From the NCBI GenBank assembly GCA_965644295.1, contig CBFFRP010000002.1, forward strand, positions 124,001 to 188,000: a stretch of 64,000 nucleotides of DNA, given 5' to 3'. The DNA is from Paraphysomonas bandaiensis. Its lineage: Eukaryota; Protista; Chrysophyceae. The translations under genes and the position numbers were made by a program. Under the pieces are notes generated by a model that saw nothing but the letters and a program-made list of their open reading frames with translations, was not told the origin of the DNA and did no database searches. This document shows positions 53,750 to 64,000 of this stretch, in pieces. Numbering within the stretch: position 1 is the stretch's first letter; each line of letters opens with the position of its first letter.

Positions 53750-54770
53750 ATGTGTATGTATGTATGTATGTATGTATGTATGTATGTATGTATGTATGTA
53801 TGTATGTATGTATGTATGTATGTATGTATGTATGTATGTATGTATGTATGTATGTATGTATGTATGTATGTATGTATGTATGTATGTATGTATGTATGTA
53901 TGTATGTATGTATGTATGTATGTATGTATGTATGTATGTATGTATGTATGTATGTATGTATGTATGTATGTATGTATGTATGTATGTATGTATGTATGTA
54001 TGTATGTATGTATGTATGTATGTATGTATGTATGTATGTATGTATGTATGTATGTATGTATGTATGTATGTATGTATGTATGTATGTATGTATGTATGTA
54101 TGTATGTATGTATGTATGTATGTATGTATGTATGTATGTATGTATGTATGTATGTATGTATGTATGTATGTATGTATGTATGTATGTATGTATGTATGTA
54201 TGTATGTATGTATGTTGTATGTATGTATGTATGTATGTATGTATGTATGTATGTATATGTGTATGTGCGTGTGTATGTGTATGTATGTATGTATGTATGT
54301 ATGTATGTATGTATGTATGTATGTATGTATGTATGTATGTATGTATGTATGTATGTAGGTATGTATGTAGGTATGTATGTATGTATGTATGTATGTATGT
54401 ATGTATGTATGTATGTATGTATGTATGTATGTATGTATGTATGTATGTATGTATGTATGTATGTATGTATGTATGTATGTATGTATGTATGTATGTATGT
54501 ATGTATGTATGTATGTATGTATGTATGTATGTATGTATGTATGTATGTATGTATGTATGTATGTATGTATGTATGTATGTATGTATGTATGTATGTATGT
54601 ATGTATGTATGTATGTATGTATGTATGGATGTATGTATGTATGTATGTATGTATGCATGTATGTATGTATGTATGTATGTATGTATGTATGTATGTATGT
54701 ATGTATGTATGTATGTATGTATGTATGTATGTATGTATGTATGTATGTATGTGCGTGTATGTATGTGTGT
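53750..54770. repeat. (TATG)n microsatellite, ~1 kb, with interruptions
   Basis: Direct. Confidence 0.99.
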
Positions 54771-54859: not shown

Positions 54860-56458
54860 ATGTCGAGTATATCTGATCTTAACGATGATGTGTTGCGTCT
54901 CATCTTCTCTATGATCCCACACTCAGCTCTCCTTCCTGCGATGATGACTTGTAGGAGATTTCACGATACGGTTTACACTGATATCATGAGAGACAAGAGC
55001 AGAGATGAGTGGAGATATAACAGGAGATATAACACGAGAGATGAGAGGAGAGATGAGATGAGAGTTAGGTCTCATGCATCTCACTACTGTATGACTAACG
55101 CAATGGTCTCATGGGCTCTGTCTATGGGCTGCCCACAGCGTGTGCTTTCATATAGCTGTGCACTACACGGCAGACTACAGCAGCTCATACATCTCAAACA
55201 TACCGCCCTTCACAATGATACGACCACACAGGAACCGCTACACCAATCAGATATACGGAATGATATTGCTGTACAGGGTAGCCAGGTTAAGATGTTGCCT
55301 CCTTCACCGGACCCTCCATGTCCATGGGGTGAAAGGACTTGCTGCGCTGCTGCAAGAGGTGGACACTTGGATATTCTGCAGTGGCTTCGTTCACAGGACC
55401 CTCCATGTCCATGGGATGAAAATGCTTGCTATGCTGCTGCTTCTTGTGGACAATTGCATGTTCTTCAGTGGCTTCGTTCACAGGACCCTCCATGTCCATG
55501 GAGTGTATGGACTTGCCAGGCTGCTGCTTTTAGTGGGCACTTAGATGTTCTACAGTGGCTTCGTTCACAGGACCCGCCATGTCCATGGAGTGGAGAAACT
55601 AGCCGTGCTGCTGCAGGAGGTGGACACTTGGATGCTCTGCGGTGGCTTCGTTCGCAGGACCCTCCATGTCCATGGGATGAAGATACTTGCCGTTATGCTG
55701 CTTATAGTGGACACTTGGATATACTGCAGTGGCTTCGTTCACAGGACCCTCCATGTCCATGGAATGCAAGGACATGTTGTGATGCTGCAGAGTTTGGACA
55801 CTTAGATGTTCTGCAGTGGCTTCGTTCACAGGACCCTCCATGTCCATGGGATGAAAATACTTGCCAGGCTGCTGCCGAGGGTGGGCACTTGGATGTTCTT
55901 CAGTGGCTTCGTTCACAGGACCCTCCCTGTCCATGGGATGAAGATGCTTGCTCCGCTGCTGCTTTTGCAGGACACTTGGATATTCTGCAGTGGCTTCGTT
56001 CACAGGACCCTCCATGTCCATGGGATGAATATACTAGCCGTGATGCTGCTTCTGGTGGGCACTTGGATGTTCTACAGTGGCTTCGTTCACACGACCCCCC
56101 ATGTCCATGGGATGAATGGGCTTGCCGTAATGCTGCTTCTGGTGCATATTTGGATGTTCTGCATTGGCTTCGTTCACAGGACCCTCCATGTCCATGGGAT
56201 GAATATACTTGCTATGCTGCTGCAGAGGGTGGACACTTGAATGTTTTGCAGTGGCTTCGTTCACAGGACCCTCCATGTCCATGGGATGATGATTCTTGCC
56301 AGACTGCTGCAGAGGGTGGACACTTGGATGTTCTGCAGTGGCTTCGTTCACAGGACCCTCCATGTCCATGGGATGAAGATTCTATCCGTGCTGCTGCTTC
56401 TTCTCGACACTTGGATATTCTGCAGTGGCTTCGTTCACAGGACCCTCCGTGTCCATGA
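54860..56458 (+). CDS. F-box protein with 13 ankyrin-like 29-aa repeats (GHLDVLQWLRSQDPPCPW type); intronless
   Basis: N-terminal F-box-like ISDLNDDVLRLIFSMIPHSALLPAMMTCRRF. Repeats WDxxTCxxAAxxGHLDVLQWLRSQDPPCP are of the type known from algal and giant-virus ankyrin proteins. Confidence 0.85.
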   Translation: MSSISDLNDDVLRLIFSMIPHSALLPAMMTCRRFHDTVYTDIMRDKSRDEWRYNRRYNTRDERRDEMRVRSHASHYCMTNAMVSWALSMGCPQRVLSYSCALHGRLQQLIHLKHTALHNDTTTQEPLHQSDIRNDIAVQGSQVKMLPPSPDPPCPWGERTCCAAARGGHLDILQWLRSQDPPCPWDENACYAAASCGQLHVLQWLRSQDPPCPWSVWTCQAAAFSGHLDVLQWLRSQDPPCPWSGETSRAAAGGGHLDALRWLRSQDPPCPWDEDTCRYAAYSGHLDILQWLRSQDPPCPWNARTCCDAAEFGHLDVLQWLRSQDPPCPWDENTCQAAAEGGHLDVLQWLRSQDPPCPWDEDACSAAAFAGHLDILQWLRSQDPPCPWDEYTSRDAASGGHLDVLQWLRSHDPPCPWDEWACRNAASGAYLDVLHWLRSQDPPCPWDEYTCYAAAEGGHLNVLQWLRSQDPPCPWDDDSCQTAAEGGHLDVLQWLRSQDPPCPWDEDSIRAAASSRHLDILQWLRSQDPPCP

Positions 56459-56752
56459 AATTGAGGCGCTTGCCGTCCTGCTGCAGAGGGTGGACACTTG
56501 AATGTTTTGCAGTGGCTTCGGTCACAGGGCCCTCCATGTCCATGGGATGAAGATTCTATCCGTGCTGCTGCTTCTTCTCGACACTTGGATATTCTGCAGT
56601 GGCTTCGTTCACAGGACCCTCCGTGTCCATGAAATTGAGGCGCTTGCCGTCCTGCTGCAGAGGGTGGACACTTGAATGTTTTGCAGTGGCTTCGTTCACA
56701 GGACCCTCCATGTCCATATATAGGTTATAGATTTTGTGATGACAATGATTGA
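56459..56752 (+). pseudogene. Three further in-frame ankyrin-like repeats beyond a premature TGA
   Basis: Repeats continue in frame after the TGG->TGA change at 56456-56458. The stop-bearing unit is duplicated 174 bp later. The likely ancestral C-terminus is CPYIGYRFCDDND*. Confidence 0.75.
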
Positions 56753-56959
56753 TGTGAGATGTTTATTACAATATTTATTAATTTATTATCCCCATTTCAT
56801 CTCAGAAAATCGTGTTTTGTCCTGAACCAGTTTCAACAAAACGCTCGTATTAGCACCGGGCCAATATAGAAGTAGTGAATGTCTGATTAGTAGCAATTGG
56901 CGTGTAGCAAAACAATTTAACTAACTAGTGCTGAACTCTGATATCATACTATTTAGCGC

Positions 56960-57780
56960 TGGTTGAAACGACATCACTGAACAATACTTTCACTCTATGC
57001 TGATTTTATAAGTTAGAGACATTTAGGAAACATATAATAAACTTATGATCAATATCACTTGTCAATCGCCAAATTCATGTTGTCACAACCACCAATCATT
57101 TCCATACAATCTTAGATAACACGAACTCATACGGTCAATATATTTCAGTCTCACTACTACGATATTGCTATCATGACATTAGTTCTCATAATACAGTTAA
57201 CCACTTTTGTATTCTTCCATTAACTGTCATAAGCCAAATATCTTTGAACTACAGCTTTCAATTGCTCTCAAATAGCAGAACTCAACACTCCTCTCAATCC
57301 AAAGCTGTAGATAAACTCTTCACATCAGAAGACATAACTGACGGATACACAACCACCAAAAGCCACATAGGACAAACAGGTGGACATATGACTCCGACAT
57401 ATTTGCTGGCCTCTCTAATAACCACCACTGATGATTTCTGATTCTCGCCTAGACATCTCAACATCCATAAGTCACTCAACATAAAGATTTCGTCAATATA
57501 TCTGCAGTCTGATCATCAATCCCAACGTGATACAATATCGCAGCATTGAATGATCCTACTGAATGACTCACAAGCCGTGACTCAACTGTGTATGGATCAA
57601 GAAAAGCTGATCTCTTGTCTCGACTAAAAGTATCCGCCAGCGGGCAGATGATACTGTCCAGGCACAACGACAGGCACACTGACAGAAACATTAACAAACT
57701 GTATGTGCTCTTTAAGAAAAGTAAACACTCCTCGATGTCACTGGGAGTCAACACAATGGAATGTGAAGGGGCTGGAAATT
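56960..57780 (-). mobile_element. Copia 3' remnant (RNase H end, PPT, LTR), same family as 45338-47560
   Basis: YHVGIDDQTADILTKSL (Copia RNase H C-terminal ADILTK), then PPT gagaggag and tgttgag at 57287. 57040-57400 aligns by eye with 45440-45800. The left LTR boundary is uncertain. Confidence 0.75.
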
Positions 57781-58241
57781 GCTGTAAAAAAGTGAGCGAA
57801 GGTCAAAAATCATCGAGATTTTTTCTAAAATGACTGTTTTTCACAACCGCATGCCAAAAAAACCCTCTATATTCTTCAAACTTTTCCTCATTTTTTTGAT
57901 TTAAAAAGTGTGGAATCCGCTATAATCCAAAATACACCTGGCTGGAGGAGATACACTCCTGTGCTGTGTGTTTTCTAGAATATCTTGCTTGTATATCTGA
58001 AGGATTCTACGTTCACTTGAGTATGTTATGTACTGCTCTATATGTATAGCAGTACAGACAGTAGTAGCATATATAGAGTGCATGTGTATGTATGTATGTA
58101 CTGCTCTGTAGTATGTATAGCAGTACTGTACAGACAGTAGTAGCATATATAGAGTGAGTGCATATGTATGTATGTATGTATGTCTATATATATGAGTGGA
58201 ATGGTATTAAGGATCATCATCAGAGTTACATTCATATTACA

Positions 58242-60830
58242 ATGAAAAAGAAAATATACATACATTATGAAGATGAGGGGATTGAAAGTATTACACAGAG
58301 TGTTTGGATTGGATCAGATGATCGATCTGATGGGATTATAGAGAGTGTATTGGGATCACATCCATTAGAGGGACGCTATCAGTTAGTGACCTCATCAGGT
58401 GATCGATTAGCTTCATATGAGAAATTATTTGATTGGGTAGAGAATAAAGATGATTGTTTTATAGTGAAAACATCATCATCATCAGCAGCAGCAGATTCAG
58501 AGAAGGTATCTTCTGATAGGAGTGATAAGGGGCCTGTAGGGGGTGATAAGGGGCCTGTAGGAGGTGATAAGGGGCCTATAGGGGGATATAAAGAGGCTGT
58601 TACTGAAATAGAAACATTGATTAGCAAACGATCCTTTCGTAAAGCAGGTGAATTATGTGAGAGAGTGCTGTCTCATGTAAAGCCCAACGATACGCTGACG
58701 CTGGAGTATTTGACTCATGTGTATTTTGCCTCCGGTAAATATGAAAAAGCTATCTCCGCCGGAGAACAGGCACTGCGAATCATTACCAACAGCTCATCTA
58801 GCCAGCCTCGCCCTCAATTACACCTTATTATCGCTCAGTCATATCGTGAAAATGAAGACTTCGAGGAGGCCTTGGATCAGGCGAAAGAAGGGGTCGCTAT
58901 TATTAAGTCTGCTGTAGCCCGATCCAAGGGACGGGATAGTCAGTTGAATGAGCTTTATCTGGATTTGAATGCCGAAGTGACCAGAATTCTCTTTACGATG
59001 GGTCGTCATATGGAGGCCGGGGATCATGTAAATACTTTGATGACTGGCAACAACCTGTCAGGGGTAGACCCGCAGTCGCACGTAGGTTGTCTCTTGGCTT
59101 ATGGAGAAATCGCAGCTCAATATGACAAGGTATATTTATTTACTCTGCTAATTTTGCCGTAACTAGTATGTCTAGGTGCCAGAAGCAATGCAGGCAGGTC
59201 TCAAGGCAGTGGTGGCTGCTGCTTCAGACAAACGTGCTAAGCGGCTTATATCAGACCTTTTATCTCGTACTGGTGGCTTGGATGAACTGTACAGACAGGC
59301 TCCACCTTCTGACAAGGCCCCTGGTGCGTACGCCTTCTTGGCAATGGCCTGTAAGGACAATGGGTGTCTAACTACATCCGAGGCGCTCCTCAGACGAGTA
59401 TTGAGTATCGAAGGCTCTCTGAATACAATGGATATACATAACCACGCGTTGAATTTGGTTCATGTTTTGGAGAGCGAGTGCGACTATATTTCTGCGGTGC
59501 GAGCTATTGTCGAGCATATGCAAGCCGTTGGCAGAGGGAAGTTCGCATGTGCGGCTGAGGTTGATAGGCAGAAATTGGGATCTCTGGCTGATGTCCTGAC
59601 TTCTGCATTATCGACAGCAAGCACTTCCTCAAAGCGCGTCTGTTTGTGGTATCCTCCTATTGTGAACACCAGCACCGCTCAGAGGGTTATATGGATTAGT
59701 GGCACAGCTACTAGAGACGGGCATGATGTGGACGGACACTGTAGAGTGGTTCCTGCAGACTCCGATAATAGCCAAGCCCAAGATCTTCGATCTGTTGAGA
59801 CTACTCTCTCACCGTCGACACTGGACCTTCTAGCGATGGCGTTTACTGCCGTGAAGATACTATATACTCAAGGCAATATCGATGCCATCCCGTCGTTAAT
59901 TAGCATCATTGAGCCCTTGCGTCGAATGTCGAAGACCCCCGTCCACGAGACATCTGTGCGGAACGAACACGCCTACTACTTATGTATATGTCAGCTTCTT
60001 GCCCGCATGCATAGCCACGATTACGCTTATTCTTATATTCACGGGGAAGGTGGGGATCAAAGTGCTCCACTTTTTGTATGTGGTGACTCGCATTGCCTCT
60101 CTTCCGCATGGGGGGGGGTATCATTTTCTGGAGGGAAAAGGACCATTGTGCCCAAACTCGTAACTGGTTTGAAGCAGTATCACTTAAGACCCCAGTCCAA
60201 CTTCTATACCAAAGAATGCTTCACTAGAACTATGGCTAGTATTCCTGATGGCTCGGATGTAAGTGGCACCAACTCATTGTTCCTAATTACTTACGTCATT
60301 GGTTTGTCATTTGTGATGTAGGTGGTATTTTTAATTGGAGAGATAGACTGCAGAGAAGGTCTACTCGTGGCAGTAGAAAGGGGGAGATACGCAACATTGG
60401 AAGAAGGTATGCGTGCTACAGTGAGCATATTTAAGTCAGTTGTTGCAAATCTCGTGAAGAAAAGAAAGTTCAAGGTGTGTTCACGTATAACTAAATCGAA
60501 TTTTCGAACTCATACAATTATGCGTTTCGCACGGGATAGGTTTATATTCACCCTATTCTTCCAGTTCTGGATGTCACTAGAGATATAGTGGCCGCGTTCA
60601 ATCCTATCTACAAGCAAGCTATGACCTCTATTACAGGTAGTATTCAACAATATTGTATCGCCAAGTGGATAATAGTCAGTCTTTGAGTAGGCGTGAAGTG
60701 GTTGGATTTCTACGATGACCTCATAACAGCTGATGGCAAGAACCTACGTGATGACATGAAAATGGACGGCACGCATGTGAGCCCAGCATATGTCAGGCTA
60801 ATGGAAGAGGCCTTTCAAAAAGTGAATTAA
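58242..60830 (+). CDS. TPR-repeat protein with C-terminal SGNH/GDSL-like domain (5 exons)
   Basis: TPR-like helices YLTHVYFASGKYEKAISAGEQAL and AQSYRENEDFEEALDQA. SGNH-like blocks VCGDSH, GEIDCREG and DGTHV. Introns at about 59130-59176, 60259-60321, 60475-60539 and 60637-60690. Stop at 60828-60830. Confidence 0.75.
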
Positions 60831-61463
60831 ATCACGATGCGGAGATACTTATCTAAAATTAGTCAATCTTTCAACGGTTATGAGCATTACGTTTGTGATG
60901 ATATGTATCAGCTGCTAGGACGTGCATTCAGCGAGATGTTGATTGAAGTAATGCGTTTAAATATTTATGTTAGTATTTTCATTTTCATAGACCTTTTTAT
61001 TTTACATGCTGTATGGGCTTACCCACGGGCATATATATTATATACTTTAGTTCGTGTTAAAACTACTGCAATAGTTAAGTTTCCTCTTCACGAATATAGA
61101 AATTTCACTGCGCTGCAATGTGACCAAAAGTCTTTGGTGGGACGAAAGCTGAGCAATTACTATGACATCTAATGAATCGTTGATTGTTGTGCGTTCGTAT
61201 TTTACCAATTCTTAGTCTTGGTTGCAGAGTGTGAAGACATAATATTAGTTATTTAACAACAGATCAGTGCTTCTCTTTTAGTATGCTATTACTAATTGGA
61301 ACCATACAGCGTACTGGGTATCAGGGGGGGATAAAGTATATTACAAAGAATAAAGAATTTACCCGCAATCTATTTTGAAATAAAAATATAGGTTGTTCCA
61401 ATAAAACCTAATATGTATTATTGGATTCGACTAGATATACTGTATACTGTGTCACTCGAAAAA

Positions 61464-64000
61464 TCACCCAAGCGTAGTTTTCACCCCATCCAAGTGTCCA
61501 CGCTGTGCAGCTACAAGGCAAGTCCCCATTCATTCCATGGACATGGAGGGTCCTGTGAACGAAGCCACTGCAAAACTTCCAAGTGTCCACCACAAGCAGC
61601 ATCATGGCAAGTCCTAGCATCCCATGGACATGGAGGGTCCTGTGAACGAAGCCACTGCAAAACATTCAAGTGTCCACTCTGTGCAGCAACAAGGCAAGTC
61701 CTTGCATCCCATGGACAGGGAGGCCCCTGTGAACGAAGCCACTGCAAAACATCCAAGTGTCCACTCTGTGCAGCTGCAAGGCAAGTCCATTCATTCCATG
61801 GACATGGAGGGTCCTGTGAACGAAGCCACTGCAAAACATCCAAGTTTCCACGCCCTGCAGCAACATGGCAAGTCCTAGCATCCCATGGACATGGAGGGTC
61901 CTGTGAACGAAGCCACTGCAAAACTTCCAAGTGTCCACCATAAGCAGCAACACGGCAAGTCCTTGCATCCCATGGACAGGGAGGGTCCTGTGAACGGAGA
62001 CAATGCAAAACCTCCAAGTGTCCACGCCATGCAGCATCACGGCAACACCATTCATCCCATGGACATGGAGGGTCCTGTGAACGAAGCCACACCAGAACAT
62101 CCAAGTGTCCACGCTGTGCAGCAACACGGCAAGTCCATTCATCCCATGGACATGGAGGGCCCTGTGAACGAAGCCACTGCAAAACCTCCAAGTGTCCACG
62201 TTGTGCAGCAACACGGCAAGTCCATTCATTCCATGGACATGGAGGGTCCTGTGAACGAAGCCACTGCAAAACTTCCAAGTGTCCACCACAAGCAGCATCA
62301 CGGCAAGCATCTTCATCCCATGGACATGGAGGGTCCTGTGAACGAAGCCACTGCAAAACATTCAAGTGTCCACGCTGTGCAGCAACAAGGCAAGTCCTTG
62401 CATCCCATGGACAGGGAGGGCCCTGTGAACGAAGCCACTGCAAAACCTCCAAGTGTCCACGTTGTGCAGCAGCACGGCAAGTCCATTCATTCCATGGACA
62501 TGGAGGGTCCTGTGAACGAAGCCACTGCAAAACTTCCAAGTGTCCACCACAAGCAGCATCATGGCAAGTCCTAGCATCCCATGGACATGGAGGGTCCTGT
62601 GAACGAAGCCACTGCAAAACATTCAAGTGTCCACTCTGTGCAGCAACAAGGCAAGTCCTTGCATCCCATGGACAGGGAGGGCCCTGTGAACGAAGCCACT
62701 GCAAAACCTCCAAGTGTCCACGTTGTGCAGCTACAAGGCAAGTCCATTCATTCCATGGACATGGAGGGTCCTGTGAACGAAGCCACTGCAAAACTTCCAA
62801 GTGTCCACCACAAGCAGCATCATGGCAAGTCCTAGCATCCCATGGACATGGAGGGTCCTGTGAACGAAGCCACTGCAAAACTTCCAAGTGTCCACCACAA
62901 GCAGCATCATGGCAAGTCCTAGCATCCCATGGACATGGAGGGTCCTGTGAACGAAGCCACTGCAAAACTTCCAAGTGTCCACCATAAGCAGCAACACGGC
63001 AAGTCCTTGCATCCCATGGACAGGGAGGGTCCTGTGAACGGAGACAATGCAAAACATCCAAGTGTCCACGCCATGCAGCATCACGGCAACACCATTCATC
63101 CCATGGACATGGAGGGTCCTGTGAACGAAGCCACACCAGAACATCCAAGTGTCCACGCTGTGCAGCAACAAGGCAAGTCCATTCATCCCATGGACATGGA
63201 GGGCCCTGTGAACGAAGCCACTGCAAAACATCCAAGTGTCCACGTTGTGCAGCAACACGGCAAGTCCATTCATTCCATGGACATGGAGGGTCCTGTGAAC
63301 GAAGCCACTGCAAAACTTCCAAGTGTCCACCACAAGCAGCATCATGGCAAGTCCTAGCATCCCATGGACATGGAGGGTCCTGTGAACGAAGCCACTGCAG
63401 AACATTCAAGTGTCCACTCTGTGCAGCAACAAGGCAAGTCCTTGCATCCCATGGACAGGGAGGGCCCTGTGAACGAAGCCACTGCAAAACCTCCAAGTGT
63501 CCACGTTGTGCAGCTACAAGGCAAGTCCATTCATTCCATGGACATGGAGGGTCCTGTGAACGAAGCCACTGCAAAACTTCCAAGTGTCCACCACAAGCAG
63601 CATCATGGCAAGTCCTAGCATCCCATGGACATGGAGGGTCCTGTGAACGAAGCCACTGCAAAACTTCCAAGTGTCCACCATAAGCAGCAACACGGCAAGT
63701 CTTTGCATCCCATGGACAGGGAGGGTCCTGTGAACGAAGCCACCGCAGAACATACAAGTTTCCATCTTCTGCAGCAGCACGGCAAGTCCATTCATCCCAT
63801 GGACATGGAGGGTCCTGTGAACGAAGCCACTGCAAAACCTTCAAGAGTCCACGCTCTGCAGCAACACGGCAAGCATTTTCATCCCATGGACAGGGAGGGT
63901 CCTGTGAACGAAGCCACTGCAGAACATCCAAGTGTCCAACTTCTGCAGCATCATGGCAAGTCCATGCATCCCATGGACATGGAGGGTCTTGAGAACGAAG
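61464..64000 (-). CDS. Ankyrin-like repeat protein (~29 repeats visible), 5'-partial; paralog of 54860-56458
   Basis: Same 87-bp scaffold. The frame is open from the window edge. A 2-nt insertion (aatgaatgggg instead of aatgaatgg) in the last repeat gives a stop at 61511, whereas the uninterrupted frame would stop at 61464-61466. Confidence 0.85.

Follow-up and report, generated by a model that had tools for sequence, protein, structure and literature searches.

Candidate diversifying SCF substrate receptors built from short-loop ankyrin arrays in the chrysophyte Paraphysomonas bandaiensis

Protein families that are assembled from near-identical repeats pose the question of what such repeats are selected to recognise, and a 64,000-nucleotide stretch of the Paraphysomonas bandaiensis genome (contig CBFFRP010000002.1, positions 124,001 to 188,000; hereafter the window) raises it in acute form, since two of its genes carry long arrays of ankyrin-like units that differ at the same few residues. 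An earlier, sequence-only reading of this DNA had proposed that the two genes encode a natural library of binders, one of them coupled to an F-box. Here, we complete the second gene, follow the family through the genome, and examine where the units vary, how they are selected and how the arrays change. We consider it fairly probable that these genes belong to a diversifying family of substrate receptors for SCF (Skp1-cullin-F-box) ubiquitin ligases, shaped by turnover of units and by positive selection. The parts of this reading stand at different strengths: sequence evolution and predicted structure support a diversifying recognition family, a role within SCF ligases is a plausible proposal, and an immune or antiviral role is speculation.

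Two inverted paralogues and a genome-wide family

Tandem Repeats Finder recovers both arrays as 87-bp repeats, the first at 55303-56717 (16.3 copies, 80% matches) and the second at 61487-64000 (28.9 copies, 86% matches). The two genes are convergent, with gene 1 on the forward and gene 2 on the reverse strand, and intronless, and their arrays together hold about 45 units, all as the sequence-only reading had it. Gene 2 extends beyond the window, and we completed it using the next 9.9 kb of the contig: its frame stays open to window-equivalent position 68329 (G000:C2:192329), about 4.3 kb past the window end, and encodes a protein of 2272 amino acids with 73 units. The N-terminus of this protein is 93% identical to the F-box N-terminus of gene 1, so that both genes encode F-box proteins and are inverted paralogues of one another. 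The F-box had been attributed to one member only; in fact it stands at the N-terminus of both genes and of about 90 others. Besides the F-box, a Pfam scan of the two proteins returned only ankyrin families, with Ank_4 at 132.9 bits (cut-off 22.7) and Ank_2 at 83.4 bits in gene 1 and Ank_4 at 224.3 bits in gene 2, and no NACHT or NB-ARC domain.

The family is large, as had been anticipated. Across the assembly (62.6 Mb, 669 contigs), a 36-mer of the repeat scaffold has 1017 matches with at most three mismatches, against none for the reversed control, and the 149-residue N-terminal module has 136 matches from 91 candidate loci, only two of them with internal stops. Nearly all of these 136 matches sit in open frames of 260-2280 amino acids. 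The module marks about 90 genes, mostly open and intronless and often clustered in tandem (for example on contigs C138, C551, C43 and C148), and family members occur on more than 60 nuclear contigs. From 60 further loci we took 60 full-length genes; the resulting set of 65 open reading frames contains 734 well-formed units, and of 889 spacings between units, 760 measure exactly 29 residues.

Expression, which the sequence-only reading required, is indicated for gene 1 by RNA contigs. Such contigs from three sequencing runs cover the N-terminal part of gene 1, and one of them crosses the gene-1-specific junction with the first unit without a mismatch. The same three runs yield contigs of a TPR-repeat gene that lies between the two ankyrin genes, and both introns of that gene are absent from these contigs, which is why we take the runs to contain RNA. 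A poly(A) marine metatranscriptome also includes matching contigs.

Variable positions and selection on the repeat

Each unit follows the consensus W-D-x-x-T-C-x-x-A-A-x-x-G-H-L-D-V-L-Q-W-L-R-S-Q-D-P-P-C-P, with W as position 1. An entropy profile over the 734 units places the variation at positions 2 (1.8 bits), 3 (2.4 bits), 4 (3.5 bits), 7 (3.6 bits), 8 (2.8 bits), 11 (3.3 bits), 12 (2.5 bits) and 19 (1.9 bits), with all other positions at most at about 1.2 bits. The sequence-only reading had located the variation in three dipeptide slots, x1x2, x3x4 and x5x6, and this holds, with two additions: the D/N position before the first slot and the Q/K/R position 19 also vary. Within gene 1 the variable residues are those of the D/N position and the three slots, and all 13 coding units differ from one another in their slot residues, again as described before. 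Residues in the slots are enriched in R, W, Y, D and E.

The predicted structure places these positions on an ankyrin-type fold. An AlphaFold2 run with a 32-sequence family alignment gives a predicted local distance difference test (pLDDT) score above 90 across the array and one helix-turn-helix per unit; DSSP assigns no strand in the model, and hence no beta-hairpin finger. Ahead of the array, the cap region of gene 1 is modelled as helices at residues 73-114 (pLDDT about 70-90) and resembles a degenerate first repeat, and a spacer of low confidence lies between it and the array. In some family members, AC/AT-rich runs in this spacer encode His/Thr/Tyr stretches. The best Foldseek matches of the model are ankyrin-1, NOMPC, Espin-1 (template modelling score by target 0.61), designed ankyrin repeat proteins (DARPins) and FEM1C, and designed PPR proteins are returned as well, as generic helical solenoids. 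Pfam, the model and Foldseek therefore agree on the ankyrin assignment made earlier. The units score above the Pfam Ank clan cut-off and form a helix-turn-helix solenoid; they depart from the canonical 33-residue ankyrin repeat in their 29-residue period, in the replacement of TPLH by x-T-C-x, and in a loop that is four residues shorter. The repeat is a short-loop ankyrin subtype rather than a canonical repeat.

In the model, the inner helix spans x2 to x6. The conserved T, C, A and A occupy helix positions 2, 3, 6 and 7, and the variable residues fall at positions 1, 4, 5, 8 and 9 on the opposite, single face, with the loop end varying too; the expectation that the variable residues would share one face is borne out by this spacing. 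The positions randomised in DARPins are 2, 3, 5, 13, 14 and 33. Our phmmer searches align the units to a DARPin without gaps, placing x5x6 at positions 13/14, x1 at position 5 and W-D at positions 3-4, in line with the DARPin-like contact positions suggested before.

Do the slots vary because they are selected to, or because nothing holds them in place? For random pairs of units, the ratio of the proportions of differing replacement and silent sites (pN/pS) in the scaffold is 0.25 when the two units come from different genes and 0.35 when they come from the same gene; the corresponding slot values are 1.33 and 1.70. We then counted every gene with at least six distinct units as a single observation (n=51). 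In all 51, slot pN is higher than scaffold pS, the median ratio being 2.0, or 2.5 with Jukes-Cantor correction (sign test 9e-16), and in 48 it is also higher than the pS of those scaffold codons that are interspersed among the slots. Within the window, the ratio of slot pN to scaffold pS is 2.3-2.9. Ten collinear paralogue pairs give a silent divergence (dS) of 0.057 in the N-terminal region and 0.233 in the scaffold, and a replacement divergence (dN) of 0.492 in the slots. The repeat scaffold is under purifying selection, and the seven slot residues of each unit are replaced faster than silent sites change, which is the outcome that the sequence-only reading had named as its dN/dS check.

The same reading had held the scaffold to be nearly identical even at synonymous sites. 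This is true of a 36-nucleotide scaffold core, which is often exact between units, and not of the rest, which differs at silent sites: scaffold pS amounts to 0.205 among the units of gene 1, to 0.109 among those of gene 2 and to 0.193 from one gene to the other, and with values of 0.11-0.21 in the window the scaffold is not frozen at silent sites.

Relatives in other organisms vary in the same way. Among 8000 candidates scored, 3249 match the repeat part with E values up to 0.001, including proteins of Chloropicon, Raphidocelis (annotated F-box proteins), Tribonema, Seminavis and Balamuthia and many metagenome proteins. Their units share the 29-residue consensus and the seven variable positions, with a median within-protein identity of 0.83 in the scaffold versus 0.21 in the slots. 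Slot-wise hypervariability, put forward earlier as the special feature of this locus, is therefore shared with homologues elsewhere, and its principle has been published for the ankyrin repeats of fungal NOD-like receptors (NLRs; PMC4986451).

Turnover of units and array ends

How, then, do the arrays come to differ? By scaffold DNA, the nearest neighbour of a unit lies in the same gene in 44-47% of cases, compared with 2% expected. The closest paralogues form a tandem pair on C148. Before the array they have one difference in 372 nucleotides, whereas in the array 18 of 858 scaffold nucleotides and 61 of 273 slot nucleotides differ, and their slot differences are drawn from a small recurring vocabulary of dipeptides. 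This pattern points to duplication, loss and exchange of units among arrays whose scaffolds were already uniform; much of what separates close paralogues comes from reshuffling a limited vocabulary of units, not from new mutation. Gene 2 illustrates the duplicative side of this process: a block of 12 units recurs 15 units away at 99.9% identity, several blocks of three to four units recur too, and only 42 distinct unit proteins are found among its 73 units, so that its variety is much below that of gene 1.

A dedicated diversification mechanism, in which slot codons would be mutated in a targeted manner or rewritten by templated conversion from silent units such as those that follow a stop, might be read into the C148 pair, where slot divergence far exceeds scaffold divergence despite a single N-terminal difference, and into the intact-looking silent units found directly 3' of a third of the genes. 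This closest pair is nevertheless explained by ordinary unequal exchange of complete units, and the window contains no reverse transcriptase, deaminase or recombinase linked to an array. Pairs of units with identical scaffolds and different slots, which we had considered as proof of slot-limited change and dropped as a selection artefact, are expected by chance in a few hundred cases by our estimate; their frequency is about that of chance, and they hence provide no evidence of slot-limited mutation. We regard a dedicated mechanism as very improbable.

The arrays have no fixed end. Among the 60 full-length genes, the stop falls inside the array in 38, recognisable units persist beyond it in 20, and we found no conserved C-terminal cap; the proteins end within the array. 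In gene 1, a TGA replaces the tryptophan codon of the next unit, and a 174-bp block of two units that includes this stop is duplicated. Reading TGA as tryptophan was considered and rejected: the stops of the 60 genes comprise 29 TGA, 21 TAG and 10 TAA codons, and only 8 of the 38 in-array stops lie at tryptophan codons. With stops so mixed and so few of them at tryptophan, ordinary nonsense mutation of TGG accounts for the TGA codons of gene 1. The last unit of gene 2 (61511-61540, reverse strand) drops out of the repeat frame after P-W-N-E-W and its remainder can be read in another frame, so that a one-nucleotide shift sets the present stop. Array ends are fixed by nonsense or frameshift mutations within the array, and the units after the stop of gene 1 are probably the untranslated leftover of a once longer array. 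For post-stop units of this type in general, remnants, targets of read-through and donors for conversion are all conceivable. Overall, the family evolves by birth-and-death with rapid remodelling.

So fluid an array could also be a neutral by-product of repeat instability, with unequal crossing-over and slippage reshaping an unconstrained surface that has no recognition role, or with genes on their way to becoming pseudogenes. The recent block duplications in gene 2, the array ends made by nonsense and frameshift mutation, the leftover units after the stop of 20 of the 60 genes, the lack of a conserved C-terminal cap, and the small recurring vocabulary by which the closest paralogues largely differ would all fit such an origin. 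Relaxed constraint, however, predicts that slot pN should not exceed pS, and slot pN is above scaffold pS, by about two-fold, in every one of the 51 genes tested, alongside a scaffold held at a pN/pS of 0.25-0.35. Long open frames around nearly all of the 136 N-terminal matches, the existence of RNA contigs and the variability of the same seven positions in homologues of distant organisms likewise speak against it. On this evidence we judge a purely neutral origin improbable.

Proposed F-box docking, genomic setting and known systems

We propose that a recent duplication gave rise to genes 1 and 2, which lie inverted to one another and belong to a lineage-expanded host family of about 90 genes. 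Judging from domain identity, the N-terminal F-box would most likely dock the protein on Skp1 within a ubiquitin ligase of the SCF type, and the repeat solenoid would be the part that recognises the substrate. In each unit, 22 scaffold residues under purifying selection build two helices and a short loop, and seven fast-changing residues, at the loop end and at inner-helix positions 1, 4, 5, 8 and 9, form one helical face in the model. Single units and blocks of several units are duplicated, lost and exchanged, so that paralogues with near-identical F-box regions bear different arrays. The outcome would be a repertoire of binders with differing specificities, for which defence, self/non-self discrimination and ordinary regulation are all conceivable.

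The evidence for docking comes from Pfam and from a predicted complex. The F-box that the sequence-only reading had recognised is confirmed by a match of gene 1 to PF00646 at 23.0 bits with the whole protein and 25.6 bits with its 120-residue N-terminus (cut-off 20.5), and Pfam F-box matches 27 of 30 family N-termini with E values up to 0.01. Skp1 is encoded at two loci in the genome, the second, weaker one on C426; the main gene (L092, G000:C421:88800-91000, reverse strand) appears to have three exons and two short introns. A predicted complex of F-box residues 1-50 with the product of the C-terminal exon of Skp1 scores 0.46, compared with 0.02 for the best control, and is rated as weak support. 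Of 78 solved complexes 51 reach this mark, as do 2 of 108 mismatched pairs. At least 89% of contacts are common to the runs, and pLDDT is 68 or higher for the partner.

Several points weigh against reading the family as diversifying SCF receptors. On the side of the F-box, the Pfam score lies barely above its cut-off, the region is modelled by AlphaFold2 with low confidence (pLDDT 35-54), a profile of the family N-termini matched no F-box structure among solved structures, and the weak-rated Skp1 prediction may reflect memory of solved Skp1/F-box complexes. On the side of the repeats, the DARPin alignment places x3 and x4 at positions that are framework in the canonical repeat, and exposure of the slots is deduced from helix periodicity and that alignment. 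A dN/dS comparison among repeats is a non-standard test, in which units recombine and slot sites are near saturation, and the units aligned between paralogues are often non-orthologous, as a scaffold dS above the N-terminal dS indicates; what we present is therefore a comparison of site classes on shared genealogies and not a formal site test. The RNA evidence consists of assembled contigs, from which neither expression level nor full-length transcripts can be judged.

The features of the locus are collected in Table 1. The microsatellite 5' of gene 1 has counterparts, in that microsatellite sequence of the TGTA type also lies 5' of gene 2 and microsatellite-like sequence 5' of several paralogues. 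The TPR gene has best named relatives of 29-49% identity that are taxonomically mixed. Elsewhere in the window, a single open frame of 7047 amino acids (22924-44067, forward strand) occupies a G+C-richer, strongly skewed stretch. Past the window, the third array abuts an AT-rich element that extends as far as the end of the contig. This element carries a gene for a chromodomain-bearing rve integrase (L093:1749-2768) and a 428-residue open reading frame without a Pfam match.

Table 1. Annotated features of the ankyrin locus, in window coordinates
Feature	Position	Strand	Details
(TGTA)n microsatellite	53753..54770	.	period 4, 254.8 copies; ends 90 bp before the gene 1 start codon
Gene 1	54860..56458	+	intronless open reading frame, 532 aa: F-box, degenerate cap region (predicted), 13 ankyrin-like units; TGA stop 56456-56458
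F-box of gene 1	54869..54973	+	residues 4-38; Pfam PF00646
Conserved linker and cap region of gene 1	55073..55201	+	residues 72-114; invariant columns in the family alignment
13 coding units of gene 1	55310..56455	+	87 bp (29 aa) each
Three extra in-frame units 3' of the gene 1 stop	56459..56717	+	TGA codons at the W position and at slot x1
TPR-repeat gene between the ankyrin genes	58158-60400	+	two short GT..AG introns, 59128-59173 and 60259-60321
Gene 2, 3' part in the window	61511..64000	-	TAG stop 61511-61513; last 28-29 units
Third ankyrin array	70209-71210 (window-equivalent; L031:6209-7210)	-	334 aa open, without F-box; 5' part missing

Does the family belong to the host at all? A word-based protein search with the N-terminal 150 residues returned no match, and an exhaustive profile search of the N-terminal module against 1.84 billion representative proteins returned one strong match and 35 weak ones. 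Of ten such matches scanned, six also have ankyrin repeats, and one of these (L094:8001-9575) comes from a marine metagenome contig of 27 kb that resembles a giant virus: its genes are densely packed and mostly unknown, and they include a DNA primase. The genes of the family might be endogenous cargo from giant viruses or other integrated viral elements, in which ankyrin and F-box proteins manipulate the host, and not a host system. Such an origin would suit this distant relative, the frequency of the repeat type in marine metagenome contigs, the integrase element and truncated array a few kilobases past gene 2, and the large ankyrin families of giant viruses (PMC5871332). Members of the family nevertheless occupy more than 60 nuclear contigs, the TPR gene, with introns that are spliced in RNA contigs, is only about 1.7 kb away from gene 1, and the G+C content of the genes (about 43-53%) fits the surrounding host DNA and not the AT-rich element. 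About 90 copies of the N-terminal module here, set against a single strong match among all of those representative proteins, also argue for a host family, and we hold viral cargo to be quite unlikely.

The family reading that we prefer, diversifying SCF receptors, has its nearest parallel in fungal NLRs, whose WD, TPR and ANK repeats combine a fixed scaffold with positively selected positions that map to the concave binding face, and with variation in repeat number and exchange of repeats (PMC4986451). As in HNWD of Podospora (Dyrka et al. 2014, PMC4986451), the repeats here are near-identical with a few hypervariable, positively selected positions, repeat number varies, and exchange occurs within and between paralogues. 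The fungal proteins, in contrast, carry NACHT or NB-ARC and an effector domain, and their repeats have 33 residues and not the 29 found in this marine protist. With the F-box as the only other domain, the output would be ubiquitination and not NOD oligomerisation. The family resembles fungal NLR repeats in working, not in membership.

Other systems share parts of this design. In nematode and plant F-box families, as summarised in PMC8120010 (citing Thomas 2006), the F-box is under purifying and the recognition domain under positive selection; these families too are large and tandem-duplicated, and a link to defence has been proposed for them (Thomas 2006 in PMC8120010; Ma et al. 2021). As far as these accounts go, their recognition domains are FTH, FBA, LRR, Kelch and WD40 domains that change by point substitution within a single domain, unlike the modular ankyrin array and the reassortment of repeat units seen here. 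A further parallel lies in viruses. Poxvirus ankyrin proteins carry an F-box-like motif at the C-terminus and are viral anti-host factors. In our family, by contrast, the F-box is N-terminal and the genes stand among spliced nuclear genes. What the poxvirus PRANC and giant-virus ankyrin families have in common with it is the pairing of ankyrin repeats with an F-box-type, SCF-recruiting motif and accordion-like expansion, described for BsV and poxvirus ankyrin or ankyrin/F-box families together with very recent duplicates and disrupted copies (PMC5871332).

Two further systems complete the comparison. Like DARPins, the units appear from their sequences to join a fixed consensus scaffold to a handful of variable surface positions per repeat. 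DARPins, however, are artificial proteins with 33-residue repeats between an N-cap and a C-cap; the natural repeat has a loop four residues shorter, varies at x3 and x4 as well, and lacks a conserved C-cap. Transcription activator-like effector (TALE) repeats, of 33-35 residues with one repeat-variable di-residue that reads DNA bases, share only the idea of variable residues on a fixed scaffold: the TALE-like logic and non-TALE fold proposed earlier agree with an ankyrin-type fold that has seven variable positions per unit. In a limited search of open-access text that included motif strings, we found no paper on the 29-residue repeat or on a protist F-box/ankyrin repertoire. The family follows a known principle, of which it is a variant, and not a new one.

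What might such a repertoire be for? In the most specific form of the idea, the roughly 90 F-box/ankyrin proteins would be germline-encoded, innate degradation receptors against viruses or parasites, reshuffling their units and keeping post-stop units as a reserve of cassettes, and would form an SCF-based counterpart of the NLR repertoires of fungi and plants. We think this conceivable but rather unlikely. The broader proposal, a diversifying family of SCF receptors, would if true provide a second major coupling, besides NOD-like receptors, of a reshuffled modular repeat sensor to an effector. That effector would be targeted degradation, in a marine protist lineage of which hardly anything is known about how it defends itself against giant viruses and virophage-like elements, abundant as these are. 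The 29-residue short-loop scaffold is also a natural analogue of designed ankyrin binders. Since the same repeat and the same variable positions recur in other stramenopiles, in green algae and in probable giant viruses, an interface between hosts and viruses that is widespread could be what this family marks.

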